From Hyphochytrium catenoides (Eukaryota > Protista > Hyphochytriomycota), in NCBI GenBank assembly GCA_900088475.1, contig FLMG01002136.1, positions 1 through 64,000 on the forward strand: a stretch of 64,000 nucleotides of DNA, in the 5' to 3' direction. The position numbers were made by a program, and so were the translations under genes. Positions 7,268 through 31,700 of this stretch are shown one piece after another. The notes beneath the pieces are model-generated. The model ran no database searches and had not been told where the DNA came from. It saw nothing but the letters and a program-made list of their open reading frames with translations. The stretch's first letter is position 1; every line of letters starts with the position of its first letter.

Positions 7268-11258
<3,991 letters not shown>

Positions 11259-11393
11259 GAACTATAACGTCCGTTTACTTTTAATAATATCCCACCCTAG
11301 ACAGAAGAATCTCTTCAGGGAAGCCCCACACGCTTCTCTATGCACAGGGTCATATTGCTGCGTATCCTTCCTTCCTTTATTAGCAATATGCCC

Positions 11394-11491
11394 GATGAGC
11401 TCCGCCTGGGAGACCTCTTATCTGCGTTTCTCGCCCCTCATGTTGACGTTAGTTTCGCAATTCGGGCGATGAGCTCCGCCTGGGAGACCTC
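11394..11491. repeat. 24-bp direct repeat (gatgagctccgcctgggagacctc) flanking the stop codon of the capping-enzyme-like gene
   Basis: Identical copies at about 11394-11417 and 11468-11491. Confidence 0.85.
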
Positions 11492-14400
11492 GGAAGTTTT
11501 AGAAGAGGACGACGTTGGATAGAGGAACTGGGGCTCATCTTGGTCGTTCCCTGCTACTGGATAAGGCGCAGAGATAGGAGTAAAGACCACTCCTTCCACC
11601 TGTATCAGTGCGAGTACTTAGCACAGGGGAGAAGAGGATGGATAGGATTCCACGCTTACCGCGTGCGGCACCTTGGGAAGGAAGGAAGACAGGATCCACT
11701 CCGTTCTGGCGAGTTTGTATTGATCTCGCATTCGCACACGGAAAGGCTCTTTGCTGTAGTCATACTGTCCCTTCTCCAACAATCAACAGAGCACGCGATG
11801 GAAAACGGGAACAATGAGAGGGCGAAGAGTCAGGGCCAGCTCCGGCTGTACCAAAGCATCTGCTTGGTACCTGTTTTCTTGGACCTAGGATCTCGTTTTG
11901 CAAGATTTGAAGTCGTCGGTCAAGCCCGCTCTGCGCGATCAAGTCGCCCTATAGAGGTATGAGTCAAAGAAGCCAGAATTGGATAAAGTTTTGTTGACAA
12001 TGTGTGAGCGAGGAGGCTGTGTATAGATGTTTACCTCTAGCGCTAAAATATCCGTAACCAAAAATCTCTGCACATCTCCTCCAGGGTCGCGATCCGTGAC
12101 TAGGACGCCGTCTATCAGTGTTTTATCCACCACTTCGTCCTGTCCAAGAAGATGTTAGAAACGGAATATTTGAAGAACGATTAGCTGGGTGGGTGACGGG
12201 GGACCCAAATCGGCAACATGGGCTTGTGCTAATCACTTCCAACGTAGAGCACGAGAAGAACTTACTAGGTTCTTTCTCCGAGGAAAGTGCATTGGGGGCA
12301 GCTGAGTAATATCTAGGCTTTCATCAATCGCGTACACGTTGCCTCGGAGCAGCAACAACAACATCCTTCTTCTGTCGTACATAATGAAACCAGAATAGTT
12401 AGTTTGATAAGGTAAGAGTAACAACGGACGTCAGGTCAGTGTAGTGGATGAACCGGGACTGTCTCTTACCCTTTTGGTTTCCATGAGACAAAGTAGTTCT
12501 TTGACAGGGTGCCTAAAGTGTGTGAAGCTGCCACATGTTCCTTCGCTAGAACTGTCTCCTATTGCCGATGTGACAAGATATGAGAGCAGAAATCCCAGCT
12601 TAGGACCCGCCTTGTGAGGAATCCCCGGGCAATGAACTCACATAGGAGCCGGGGAAGCGGTCAGTAGCCGGGGCGATTTGGTGTAAGGTAGACTTTACTG
12701 TCTCATACTCAGGAGTACCGCGCTGCAGCCGTCTGCCCCAACTAAGGGGATCTATAGTGATAGAAGGAGGCAGGGAATCACGGTATATAAGTCTCCTCTT
12801 CTTGACGACTGGAATGCTGGATTGAAGAAGGCGGACGCTAGTCAGGACTTCGCTATCTCAGGAGAATATGACAAATGCTCATGGTAAACAATCAAGGCAC
12901 GCCGAACGGAGATCGAGAGAACAAGGAAGAGGAATAGATGCTAAGAGGTCGTAAATACTATTCCCTACGCTTTCTCACCTCATTGTCCTAGGAGGTGGCG
13001 GAGGCATAAGAAAGTTATCAGTTTGTGGCCTCTTCAGATTTTTTGATACATCCGGCGCCTTTATATCCCCTCCAGAAGAGAGATGAAGGAAAACACTCAG
13101 AGTTATTATGGCCACATACACGCATTGGCTGTGAGCCTCTACCTTCATTGGGGTCAGCAGCCAAAGCCGCCTTGTCCCATAATGGAGGAGTGGGGCGAGG
13201 AAGGACCCTGGAGTCTGAGGCAAAGTTTGCCTGGTACTTCTTACACAGAGCCTGGCAAACGGAAGCATCAGATAAACTACTCTTTGGAACAAATAAGAAC
13301 TTGATGGCGAACGCCTAGAAGTGGTCACGATGTCGAGGAAACAAGAAGCGTTAAGCTCACGCCATTTGAATAGAAGCAGGTTCAAGGGCTACTTTTAGAA
13401 GAGAGGAAATCTGACAGACAAGCAGACTTTAAAAGCGGGGAGGAAGGAGCCAAGCAACAGTAGGTAGTGGTAAACTAGTAACTGACCTCCAGGAATTGTC
13501 TCTCGTAGATGCCAGGTGACCTGGCCCCCTTAAACATAGAGACAGCTTTCTCCACAGGGCACCGAAAGTATTCAACAAGATAGCTGCCGGAGGAGAGACA
13601 GGAGATGAGATACAAGTGGACGAGATGTCTGACAGAAGGCTTTCCCCAGACGATTGATGACCAAGAATAGATTAGAGGTGCAACTTCCTTAAAAGTTTAA
13701 GGCATCGAAGAACCAGGACCCTTATCGTTGCAGGACTGAGAGAAACAAAAAAGAGTGGCCAAGTACTTAAAGTGCCATGAGACAAGAGGTGCCACACCTG
13801 ACGATCAGGAAGCCAGTAAGGTTAAACCCAAAGTCATCGAACACGGCTATGGCCCTATTCTTATCAGGCCCACTCCAGTGCTCCTGCACCAGCCGCAAGA
13901 AGCGCCGTACGACCTCCTCCGAGGGCACAGCTCCAGAAGAGCTCTCCGGAGAACCCTCTTCTCCGGATGGCACAAGTTTCTTGTAGACGACGTCCCACTG
14001 GTCCCAGTCACTAGTAAATAGACAAGCAGGAGGTGCATGGGTAGTAAGACATAAATTTAACCAACTGGCATTGAAAGGCAGAAACAGGGAAGTCGGATCT
14101 CGAAGACCAGATAAGTGAAGGCAAGCTGTCAGCTATAGGTTAGCCCACCTAACGTCATGATAATATCGAGAAGACATGGTCGCGTCAATAACGAGTCCGA
14201 CGTCAACAGGTGGCTGATTCTTCAACGCATACATCTTATCCAAGAACGTATCAGGGGTGAAAGATTGGCTTTCATCATAGTGTGCTTCGTATCTGAGAAT
14301 TTTGGGGACCGGCAGATTATTAGGAAAGCTTGGGCTATAATCAGCGGTAGAGGAAAGCGGAACGCAGTGCCCATAGTACCCGCCGCAATGTAACGATAAA

Positions 14401-14600
14401 ACGTGCTGGGTTACAAAGGTTGGTCTGAAGACTTACACAGTAGATAAAGGAGCCTTCATGGCGATGAACGCGTAGTTCTTGCTAACCCTGAGGACCGAGC
14501 AATCAGGACACTGCTTCCACTGCTCAAACGTATCTGGGCTCCAACTCAGCAGCTTCCTTCGCTGCTCATCAATCGGGGTGAAGGTTGCAATCTGAGACAT
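11438..14600 (-). CDS. mRNA capping enzyme (RNGTT)-like protein: DSP-type triphosphatase plus guanylyltransferase domain, catalytic motifs degenerate, no OB-fold
   Basis: Spliced minus-strand exons: MSQIATF...WKQCPD...AFIAMKAPLS | ...VGLVIDATMSSRYY | ...IAVFDDFGFNLTGFLIV | YLVEYF...FKGARSPGIYERQFLE | ...DRFPGSY | ...YFVSWKPKG | RRMLLLL...MHFPRRKN | ...TLIDGVLV...RFLVTDIL | ...RLQILQNEILGPRK | ...EPFRVRMRD...KVPHA | VEGVVFTP...KLTST*. This is colinear with animal/plant bifunctional capping enzymes. Confidence 0.88.
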
Positions 14601-28706: not shown

Positions 28707-31700
28707 TTACAGGTTAACGTTCACCTTGGCCGTCCAGAAAGGAATGCCGTGGCTCTTTGCCTCCTCCGACAACAAATTGCCCGACCAGTCGCCTCCATCG
28801 GCTTCAACAAGCCAAGGCCTGATGCTAACGTCTAAGTACCCATCATCCCAGGTGTATGCCAAGATTTTCACATCGTTGGCGCCTGCCTTCAGTGGGGCAC
28901 AGACGACAAAATCGCGTTGGGGACCGTCCCCATTTCCATAGTATCGCGCCATCAAGATGCCGTTGATCCAGACAAAGGCTGTTGGAGAGCCACGGAGCCT
29001 AAGCCGTAGGGGTAATTCAATCTCGGAAGTTTCTGGAAGAGAAAAAGAGGAGCGGAACCACTGAAGTCCATGGCAGCGGCTAACTGGTAGTTCATCAGCA
29101 ACTGGGTCCAAGAGAGTCCATCCCTGGTTTGAGTCTTCATCAGGGAGCCCGGAGGAGCAGTACGCATTCGGCAGTTGTCTGACGTCTACACCGGCCACCC
29201 ACCACGAAGCGTTGCCTATCTTGGCAATAGAATTTGACCTACAAACATTATAATATAAGTCAGACCCAGGTCAACCAGCTTGATGAGCTTTGGCCATTAC
29301 TACCAGTCCCAGCTATCTCAACACTATACATGTTTCTCGGACTTTAAAGTTGGCCAGGGGCTTGTTTAAAACAGAAGCAGCGAAAGTAGTCTTTTTGCTT
29401 GCCCCCCTTCGTTTTACTCTTTTCTCCCGCTTGAGTATCTCGCACTTGCTTACCTCAGTGAGGCCTTCAGTAGCCCACGAGGACTTCGGGCATCATCAAG
29501 GATGAAGACTTGGCGATTCAATCCGAAGTTCTCCGCCAATATGAGTATCTGCTGAGCGGCCACTGTAGAAGTAATAGATGTTCCATACTTAATGTAGGGA
29601 GAGATATCATACCTATGAGGGTAGAAGAGGCCAACGATGGATCTGTCAGTAACGTAGAAGGTATGACGGGGGATTGATGCAGTCAAATCCTCAAAAGTCC
29701 ATGGAGCCCAAGAGCGAGCACTTACTCTTGTGAGCCCAAGAAGCTTACGTCAGGGCCCATCTTTCCTCCCGGCCTTAATAGTTGGTGCGAATAGGTCAAG
29801 TGACCCCCAACTATCTGACCATTGACGATAACGGTGGCCCGATGTCTCGCATTGATCCTCAGGATAAGTGACTTGGGTTCGAGTTTCTCCCAAAACTGTG
29901 CCTGAGAAGACTGCAGGACCAGATCGCACTTATATATAATATGTCCGGAGGTAAAGCAGAGATCAAGCGCTGTCTCTTTGGGAGAGAAGTTCATAACTTT
30001 TGGAGAAATAGAGAGGGAGGAGGCCAATGGGACAAAGCGATATTCTGACCAATTTGGCTGCCGGACTTCCCACTTACTGAACTCCGCTCTCATGCTTTCA
30101 TCTTTCAAATGCAGTACCGGAGGAGATCTTTTCGGCAGATGCTGGTGATGGACAAGAGCGGCAGGAAAGGTGTCCGATGACGCCATCCAGGTTTCAGGAT
30201 CGTAATGGACAAGATGAGCTGCTGAAAGAAGAAAGACGTCCCTCTCATCTTCCCTATAATCCACTTGTACACTTTCAGGGCTCAGCCAGAGAGCGGCGTA
30301 AGGACCCCAAGAAAGTGAAAAGTGCTCATCGTCCACGTGTGCCTCAGGACTGGCAACAGCCGACAGTGTATAGAGTTGAGATTTGTCCAGAGCCAAGATA
30401 TACAGGTTTCCTGCTGAAGGCGAAGAAATGACAGCCCAACCAGTAGAGCGGGCAAAGGAGACGATAGTGGCTCCAGCTTCTTCCTTCTTCTCCACTTTAG
30501 CCAAGAGGTTCCCTGCCACAGCGATTGCAGGGTCTAGGAAGACCATGCTGCCCAATATCTCATCATCACTCTGAACCACCCAAAGTTCTCTTTCTCTTTC
30601 CATTCCATTGACCTCCTTCACTCGAAGCATGGTCCTTACGTGAATGGGAGTTGATGAGAAGAGAAGCTTCGGTCCTGATACAGGCTTGTAGTTACCTAAA
30701 GCTATAAAAGCTTGTTTATAAGGTAGGTGGGCGGGAATCTCCAGCTCTACACGTTCTGCCTTTCTGTCGTCGCTGGGAAGCTTTACTCGTAGGGTGAAGT
30801 TTGTCTTCCTCTGAACGTTAAAGTTTCTGAGAAAAACGAAGCGGGCTCCTGTCACCGATTGTCTCTGGCGATTGACCACACCTTCATCATTGCACAGCAC
30901 ATCTTGAGACTGACTGAGATCTGTCCTCGATAAATGCTCTGAGAAGGAGCGGGCGAACAAAGCACCCAGCCGAAGTTTCCGCAATCTACCGGAAACAAAG
31001 CCGTATTCCCTGAGGCAGGCACTGTAGTCGTAGGAAGTATACACATCCGGATCACCTGAAGAAGGCAAGGATGGGGAAGGGTCAGCTAGGAGGTAAGAAA
31101 TCTAAGGCAGGCAAGTTCTTCCATATATCACCGCCTCAACTGGCGCTTGATGGGCCATGGCCTTGGCCTTGGCCTTCATCAAAACCGTTTTCTATGTGCT
31201 TTCGGCGTTTCTATCTGCATTTGGTCATCCTCTCTTATCACCCAGCCTTGGTGACATCCGTTTGCCGCCCGTTTTACCTAGGGTGCCCCAGTTAGTCCCT
31301 CCAAAGAACATATAATAGTTCATGACAGTGCAGCCTTGCGCGACGACGGTATCAAAGATAGTGCGTGTATAGTTCTCCCCATAAAATCTGTAGATGTGAT
31401 CGTATGTGTGCTGCAATTTATAGTGGTTGAACCAACCACCCTGCAATTCCGCGATGAAGATAGGAGTCTGAAGGCGCAAAATGAAGAAGCGTTATGAGAA
31501 GGAAAGGGATCAAGAGAGATGGTATCGTCAGAAGCCAGATTTTAAGGCCCATCAGAACGAAAGCCCTAAGGGCTCTGCTTTACCTCTGCGGCGGAGAATC
31601 CAAACCCTCGGACAGTCTGCTCCATTCCATCTAAGGACTGCACGACATCCTTCGTGTCCCAATCGCCCCAGTCTTCATATTTCAGTTTTTTGGGCTTCTT

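Follow-up and report, generated by a model that had tools for sequence, protein, structure and literature searches.

What becomes of an mRNA capping enzyme that has kept its two catalytic folds and lost the residues that make them catalytic? The question is raised by a locus of Hyphochytrium catenoides (Hyphochytriomycota) within the stretch of DNA analysed here (the window), which comprises positions 1 to 64,000 of contig FLMG01002136.1 in assembly GCA_900088475.1 (64,000 nucleotides). A gene on its minus strand, running from an ATG at 14600 to a stop codon at 11438, encodes a relative of RNGTT, the bifunctional capping enzyme of animals and plants, and a reading of the letters made without database searches (the sequence-only reading) had proposed that both of its active sites are degenerate although the spliced gene is intact. 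We find that the gene is a retained double pseudoenzyme, neither a pseudogene nor an artefact of the gene model. It is an orthologue of a family found throughout the oomycetes, inherited vertically under purifying selection, and its protein keeps a cysteine-phosphatase fold and a nucleotidyltransferase (NTase) fold. The best overall explanation, to which we give a probability of about 0.8, is that it is a conserved, catalytically dead descendant of RNGTT with a probable role in binding.

Pseudoenzymes are common. Studies of capping-apparatus evolution have long relied on the kind of RNA triphosphatase as a marker. Animals and plants have a cysteine-phosphatase type, and fungi and many protists have a metal-dependent, Cet1-like type (TTM). 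Activity of the animal and plant enzyme needs the Cys and Arg of the HCx5R phosphatase loop (P-loop), the motif I Lys, the motif III Glu, the lysines of motif V, and motif VI.

Structure of the gene

The gene model was built by hand from the three minus-strand reading frames and the genomic letters, without RNA reads. It has 12 exons and 11 introns of 60–334 nt, all bounded by GT-AG, and its coding sequence (CDS) of 1539 nt specifies 512 aa, the only stop codon being the terminal one. Both ends of the gene lie exactly where the sequence-only reading had placed them, and its in-frame exons without stops are borne out. The exons are as follows.

14437..14600, minus strand: exon 1, N-terminal RRKLLSW motif and start of the phosphatase-like domain; aligns with oomycete N-termini
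14149..14292, minus strand: exon 2, phosphatase-like domain (YEAHY...VGLVIDAT)
13798..14010, minus strand: exon 3, family motif DWDQWDV and the degenerate P-loop
13812..13850, minus strand: degenerate P-loop IAVFDDFGFNLTG (aa 157-169, within exon 3), which in canonical RNGTT is VHCTHGFNRTG
13487..13583, minus strand: exon 4, end of the phosphatase-like fold (YLVEY...PGIYERQFLE)
13143..13251, minus strand: exon 5, start of the linker (PPLWD)
12642..12808, minus strand: exon 6, KKRR cluster (12803-12792) and start of the NTase domain, with FPGSY at its end
12470..12558, minus strand: exon 7, running up to motif I (…NYFVSWKPKG)
12266..12371, minus strand: exon 8, remainder of motif I (K-P-K-G-R-R), IDESL and FPRRKN
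12035..12139, minus strand: exon 9, motif III LIDGVLV (12118-12098) and RFLVTD
11871..11948, minus strand: exon 10, RRLQILQNEILGPRK, whose human RNGTT counterpart is RLQCIEREIISPR
11660..11764, minus strand: exon 11, EPFRVRMRD, in which the canonical Lys is Arg
11438..11599, minus strand: exon 12, motif IV VEGVVFTP (11599-11576), motif V remnant EPQFLYP, putative C-terminal helix SQAELIARIAKL and the stop codon

Motif I, within SWKPKGRR (aa 323-330), spans the junction of exons 7 and 8. All the degenerate motifs quoted in the sequence-only reading are present (IAVFDDFGFNLTG, KPKG, DGVLV and EGVVF), and its statement that motif V and the OB fold with motif VI are missing also holds: the motif V site reads EPQFLYP, only 25 residues run from there to the end of the protein, and neither an OB fold nor motif VI follows the remnant in exon 12. 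Exons that might restore an active site or the OB fold were sought by comparing the open reading frames (ORFs) of the introns and the 3' flank with Pfam. No phosphatase or OB-domain family was matched there, and the sole match was the exon 8 segment itself (PF01331). Single exons matched almost nothing in Pfam, the pieces being too short, except that exon 9 matched PF01331 with E 0.004. There is in addition no room for OB-fold exons downstream, because a convergent protein-kinase gene (8075-11258, plus strand) ends 180 nt beyond the stop codon.

Relation to RNGTT

The spliced model was compared with an insect RNGTT by BLASTP, and its aa 26-476 align with aa 15-463 of 595 at 30% identity (E 4e-53). 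An earlier description of this alignment as running end to end thus stands for the triphosphatase and NTase domains and fails for the final ~130 RNGTT residues, which have no counterpart in the H. catenoides protein. A profile made from the oomycete relatives and the window exons and searched against sequences of the Protein Data Bank matches human RNGTT (8p4a_M) with E 8.7e-58, so that the resemblance greatly exceeds what chance would give. This match is limited to residues 10-178 (triphosphatase) and 252-445 (NTase), ending at motif IV, and the same profile matches the triphosphatase structures 1i9s and 2c46 with E of about 1e-21. The family thus shares with RNGTT/Mce1 the order of two domains and both folds, at about 30% identity over about 450 residues for the window and insect proteins, together with the structural motifs GxN..TGFLI, PGIY, FPG, TLxDG, RLQC..EI..PR, EPF.VR and DG..F and a basic cluster in the linker. 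It differs in lacking the P-loop Cys and Arg, the motif I Asp, the motif III Glu and the whole of motif V, as well as the OB fold and motif VI.

Aligned with plant and insect RNGTTs (P0043-P0045), the family reads as RNGTT minus an internal stretch, of about 110 residues, that holds motif V, the OB fold and motif VI; the OB-fold family PF03919 is present in these three RNGTTs and in no member of the family. A C-terminal segment of the form [ST]-E-x-x-L-L-x-Y-I matches the RNGTT C-terminal helix and may be a retained part of it. Structural aligners applied to a model of an orthologue did not confirm this helix, the alignments ending near residue 539, where model confidence is low.

The modelled protein is the Saprolegnia orthologue P0008 rather than the window protein (AlphaFold, with an alignment of 41 rows), and its mean predicted local distance difference test score (pLDDT) is 71.6, with the first domain high and the second patchy. 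Its first domain superposes on the triphosphatase domain of mouse Mce1 (1i9t) with Z 21.5 and 2.4 A over 188 of 190 residues, and its second (residues 229-463) on the human guanylyltransferase 3S24 with Z 18.1. These superpositions supply, for an orthologue, the structural comparison with RNGTT that had been called for. The first domain also has the fold of the stand-alone RNA 5'-phosphatases PIR1/DUSP11 and baculovirus BVP (Z 18-20). A cysteine-phosphatase fold of the Mce1/BVP/PIR1 type is therefore indicated by the profile matches, the modelled orthologue and the collinear exons of the window gene, and the covalent NTase fold by PF01331, which matches the oomycete orthologues with E from 1e-33 to 1e-36.

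Degeneracy of both active sites

The catalytic and substrate-contacting positions were compared among canonical RNGTT, the H. catenoides protein and the oomycete orthologues.

P-loop: canonical VHCTHGFNRTG; H. catenoides VFDDFGFNLTG (His to Phe, Cys to Asp, Arg to Leu); oomycetes VFGxxGYNxxG (consensus start VAVFGxxGYN)
Motif I: canonical KADGTR; H. catenoides KPKGRR (Lys kept, Asp to Lys); oomycetes RARGxR in 28 of 28, in the context WRARGRR and without lysine
Arg315 equivalent: canonical Arg; H. catenoides Glu (in IDESL, exon 8); oomycetes Arg
CDS1 pair: Arg-Lys retained in FPRRKN (exon 8)
Motif III: canonical DGE; H. catenoides DGV (Glu to Val); oomycetes DG followed by V, I or L
Stacking aromatic of RYLxYD: canonical Tyr; H. 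catenoides Thr (RFLVTD); oomycetes Tyr or Phe
Lys of EPFxVRxK: canonical Lys; H. catenoides Arg; oomycetes Lys
Motif IV: canonical DG; H. catenoides EG; oomycetes D or E, then G
Motif V lysines and motif VI: present in RNGTT; absent in H. catenoides and oomycetes, the latter keeping a single Lys (FKF)

A P-loop of the form HCxxGxxR(S/T), with its Cys nucleophile and Arg, is found neither in the window protein nor in the oomycetes, and its x positions vary freely from species to species (FGARGYN, FGGYGYN, YGADGYN and FDDFGFN). In the second domain neither the KxDGxR signature of motif I nor the pairing of a motif III Glu with a motif IV DG is present, the acidic residue of motif IV alone persisting, and the KxK of motif V and the RxDK of motif VI are missing along with the OB fold. 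The family cannot function in guanylyl transfer, since its members do not all keep the nucleophilic lysine.

Three short environmental sequences (P0001, P0002 and P0004) carry the WDDWD family motif and retain the P-loop Cys, with the Arg replaced by His, Ile or Phe; the P-loop Arg is missing in every member seen. Because Cys persists in these sequences without Arg, there is a hint that the Arg was lost before the Cys. The placement of P0002 in the family is uncertain, a small canonical hidden Markov model (HMM) scoring it above the family HMM.

An orthologous family conserved in oomycetes

A phmmer search of 1.84 billion proteins with exon 3 returned four relatives, one of which led to a family of more than 30 oomycete proteins with a common layout. 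Its members come from Aphanomyces, Saprolegnia, Achlya, Thraustotheca, Phytophthora, Peronospora, Plasmopara, Bremia, Pythium, Globisporangium, Lagenidium and Albugo, so that orthologues with degenerate motifs, which the sequence-only reading had suggested looking for in related protists, occur in every oomycete group sampled (Saprolegniales, Peronosporales and Albugo). They include H310_10979 of Aphanomyces invadans, SPRG_07393 of Saprolegnia parasitica and PRIC1_013205 of Phytophthora ramorum, and carry only the automatic name 'mRNA capping enzyme adenylation domain-containing protein'. Searches of the protein collection by word index returned only oomycete members and three canonical RNGTTs, other lineages lying beyond the reach of the index, and a metagenome scan for the family gave 59 pattern matches, none of which was confirmed. 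Among clusters of the ESM Atlas, a 568-aa diatom cluster with PF01331 alone resembles the family, and an oomycete cluster combines PF01331 with a CCCH finger (zf-CCCH); both are leads only.

Full-length oomycete members have an identical layout and C-terminus, and the H. catenoides protein is 35–40% identical to each of them. The similarity is collinear over the full length, including WDxWDV, FPGxE, RLQxLQNEI, EPFRVRM, [DE]GxxFTP, EPxF and the C-terminal helix segment. An HMM built from oomycete sequences only gives the window protein 411 bits, against 185–195 bits for canonical RNGTTs. Identity is concentrated where the family is constrained: of the 138 columns with conservation of at least 95% in 28 oomycete sequences the window protein is identical at 78, and of 62 variable columns at 9. 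A maximum-likelihood tree groups it with the family (support 100/100) and makes it sister to all oomycete copies (88/90), a position that fits a lineage just outside the oomycetes, whose own branching tracks the species tree.

The window copy and the oomycete proteins are alike in architecture, motifs, intron positions and C-terminus. The former differs in a far shorter linker, the motif I Lys and the acidic FDDF P-loop, and it lacks GLDGS, the FKF lysine and the stacking aromatic.

Intron positions and gene neighbourhood

The orthologous genes of A. invadans (L001 8001-10175) and P. ramorum (L002 8001-10420) have 7 and 9 introns respectively, which is many for an oomycete gene. Introns of the window gene fall at matching alignment columns in 8 of 11 cases with P. 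ramorum and in 7 of 11 with A. invadans; P. ramorum shares the intron after exon 1 and both species share that after exon 2, and the intron position at exon 5 is not shared by the oomycetes. This agreement validates the hand-built model and argues for orthology by descent, and it suggests an old, slowly changing gene structure.

A linked partner gene was considered and rejected, as the neighbourhood differs among Aphanomyces (COG2 upstream), Phytophthora (a Sel1 gene upstream) and the window, where the gene is flanked by the kinase gene and an acyltransferase gene. Some Aphanomyces models, among records of A. astaci and A. invadans (P0003, P0039 and P0040), fuse COG2 to the family protein. In A. 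invadans COG2 (L001 4835-7811) and the family gene are separate, on the same strand and 190 nt apart, and because of this the fusions are probably annotation read-through.

Allelic variation

Variants were taken from contigs of public DNA runs, comprising three runs of one organism and a soil metagenome that contributed a short piece; a search for RNA runs covering this stretch listed none. The 3.4 kb between 11300 and 14750 carry 58 differences and, within introns, 2 indels, forming two haplotype-like sets of variants. The bubble contigs are at about half depth, which fits a heterozygous diploid. Forty of the 58 differences were classified; 17 of these are exonic, 11 synonymous and 6 non-synonymous, and with 359 synonymous and 1177 non-synonymous sites the ratio of non-synonymous to synonymous polymorphism (pN/pS) is about 0.17 (binomial P for at least 11 of 17 synonymous = 3e-4). 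All six amino-acid changes fall outside the family motifs, in the N-terminus, in the acidic loop within the first domain and in a single loop of the second domain, and the one allelic variant in the P-loop (13848) is synonymous.

Alternative explanations

One alternative accepts that catalysis is lost and supposes that the dead NTase domain is a reader with a part in RNA transport or quality control, one that would bind an RNA 5' end, a cap or a guanine nucleotide without reacting with it, in the manner of snurportin-1. In the m3G-cap-binding domain of snurportin-1 there is already an example of a guanylyltransferase-like NTase fold that binds and no longer catalyses, and the Pfam family of that domain (PF21974, SPN1_m3Gcap_bd) does match oomycete orthologues (for P0005, E 4e-8 and 33.8 bits). 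The oomycete pocket is also invariant and very basic (WRARGRR), and it retains the stacking aromatic and the Lys of EPFRVRMKD. PF01331 nevertheless scores 115–127 bits on the orthologues against 18–34 bits for PF21974, so that the m3G domain is not the best match, and Pfam shows no Snurportin1 N-terminal (importin-beta-binding) family in them. Snurportin-1 has such an N-terminus and no phosphatase-like domain, and the family described here is much closer to RNGTT. In the window protein the stacking aromatic (Tyr to Thr), the Arg315 equivalent (to Glu) and the EPF Lys (to Arg) have all gone, and because residues for base stacking and ribose contact are lost, nucleotide binding as a property of the whole family is doubtful. 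We regard a reader of this kind as unlikely.

That the protein is still an enzyme of altered chemistry, using the motif I lysine of the window copy or another nucleophile in the phosphatase-like domain, is improbable. The window protein does keep the motif I Lys, Gly and Arg, the motif III Asp and the motif IV acidic residue, and the three environmental sequences keep a P-loop Cys. Against this, all 28 oomycete orthologues have Arg in place of the motif I lysine, the other catalytic elements of the NTase domain (motif III Glu, motif V lysines, motif VI and OB fold) are gone, the P-loop Arg is absent from every member seen, and the P-loop positions vary as an active site would not. Pseudophosphatases of the STYX type (STYX, inactive myotubularins) offer a parallel in that the nucleophile is lost and the fold kept. 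The present case differs from these, as from DUSP11/PIR1 and BVP, in that another dead enzyme domain is joined to the dead phosphatase and that no phosphate-binding pocket is preserved.

A decaying duplicate whose frame is intact by chance would account for the many missing catalytic residues, the long branch of the window protein and a gene known from genomic DNA alone, but it is very improbable given 12 in-frame exons with canonical splice sites, orthologues kept throughout oomycete evolution, identity concentrated at constrained columns, a pN/pS of about 0.17 and indels confined to introns. An artefact of the model, with other exons restoring the active sites or adding an OB fold, can be dismissed more firmly still: the model is hand-built from genomic sequence, intron 5 is long (334 nt) and the C-terminal coding segment has a second copy in the 3' flank, yet 8 of 11 exon boundaries agree with independently annotated oomycete genes, all exons are collinear with the family, the ORFs of the introns and 3' flank match neither a phosphatase nor an OB-domain family of Pfam, the convergent kinase gene closes off the 3' side, and oomycete proteins terminate at the equivalent place.

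The prediction of a retained pseudoenzyme, as opposed to a decaying pseudogene, therefore agrees with the orthologues, the common introns, the pattern of constrained columns and the allelic variation. Several points weigh against this conclusion. The H. catenoides gene is known from genomic DNA alone, and pN/pS rests on 40 of the 58 differences. The structure model is of an orthologue, with parts of its NTase domain below pLDDT 50. The branch leading to the window protein is long, at 1.96 substitutions per site, and this copy has lost the Arg315 equivalent, the stacking aromatic, the FKF lysine and GLDGS, all kept in oomycetes; because of the branch length and these losses some relaxation in the window lineage is possible.

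Other features of the locus

The kinase domain of the convergent gene is split by a long spacer, with the N-lobe near 8075 and the C-lobe at 10340-11258, in an SRPK-like layout, and the 3' untranslated regions of the two genes probably overlap. The acyltransferase gene lies upstream of the capping-enzyme-like gene on the opposite strand. A direct repeat is present at the 3' end of the gene.

11380-11417 and 11454-11491, strand not assigned: 38-nt direct repeat, two copies 74 nt apart and 87% identical

This repeat places a second copy of the sequence coding for the C-terminal helix (…EVSQAELI…) in the 3' flank, in a frame other than that of the CDS, and it has the look of a small and recent tandem duplication that spans the stop codon. 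Elsewhere in the window there is an unusually long single ORF (29725-31068, minus strand; 448 aa) that resembles the C-terminal beta-sandwich domains of GH35 beta-galactosidases, and its nearest Atlas clusters are mostly ascomycete.

Proposed function

A protein with two dead enzyme domains probably acts by binding rather than by catalysis. Since the P-loop side chains are variable, the first domain is suggested to be a scaffold and not a binder of phosphate. The former GTP pocket is strongly basic (K/R-x-K/R-G-R-R) and, as noted above, invariant in oomycetes. The linker cluster (KKRR in the window protein, KKRKIR in oomycetes) occupies a place where RNGTT also has a basic cluster, and KKRR looks like a nuclear localisation signal.

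Between the possible binding roles we prefer, tentatively and from sequence features, that of a nuclear adaptor linked to transcription over that of a snurportin-like reader. Such an adaptor would dock on RNA polymerase II (Pol II) or read RNA 5' ends. The roles put forward in the sequence-only reading, an adaptor for the Pol II C-terminal domain or RNA ends, or a partner of a separate active enzyme, are likewise guesses. In human RNGTT six basic residues dock the Ser5-phosphorylated C-terminal domain (CTD) of Pol II (PMC8034621). The equivalents of four of these are kept (R330, K331, R358 and R411), R386 being Asn and K403 lost, but active enzymes conserve R358 and R411 as well, possibly because the two are structural, so the argument from CTD docking is a weak one.

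We infer that capping in these organisms must be done by another enzyme. A candidate is found among the Atlas clusters, where a 706-aa cluster commonest in diatoms joins PF02940 (TTM) to PF01331 and PF03919, and this, a lead only, suggests that a TTM-guanylyltransferase fusion is the active capping enzyme of stramenopiles. In view of this cluster, the advice to look for a second RNGTT whose motifs are intact may point the wrong way. It is conceivable, if rather speculative, that the fusion of cysteine-phosphatase and guanylyltransferase predates the split of stramenopiles from animals and plants and survives in oomycetes and their relatives, and possibly in diatoms, only as a dead, OB-less nuclear protein, one that would dock on the phosphorylated CTD, on Spt5 or on RNA 5' ends and so regulate or check capping by a TTM-type enzyme. 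If this is true, the family would be a new lineage-specific factor of co-transcriptional RNA processing.

Our literature searches found no paper on a catalytically dead relative of RNGTT or on the oomycete family, the nearest matches being active animal and plant RNGTTs and not a dead protein, and stramenopiles do not figure in a paper on the animal/plant-like capping enzyme of Trichomonas. An RNGTT-type fusion that is conserved in a stramenopile lineage only as a doubly dead protein suggests that the fusion is older and more widely spread than one would judge from the active enzymes, and it offers a clean example of the joint repurposing of two enzyme domains. The family is carried by major pathogens of crops and animals (Phytophthora, Plasmopara, Aphanomyces, Saprolegnia and Pythium insidiosum), in which an unstudied, conserved and probably nuclear protein merits characterisation.

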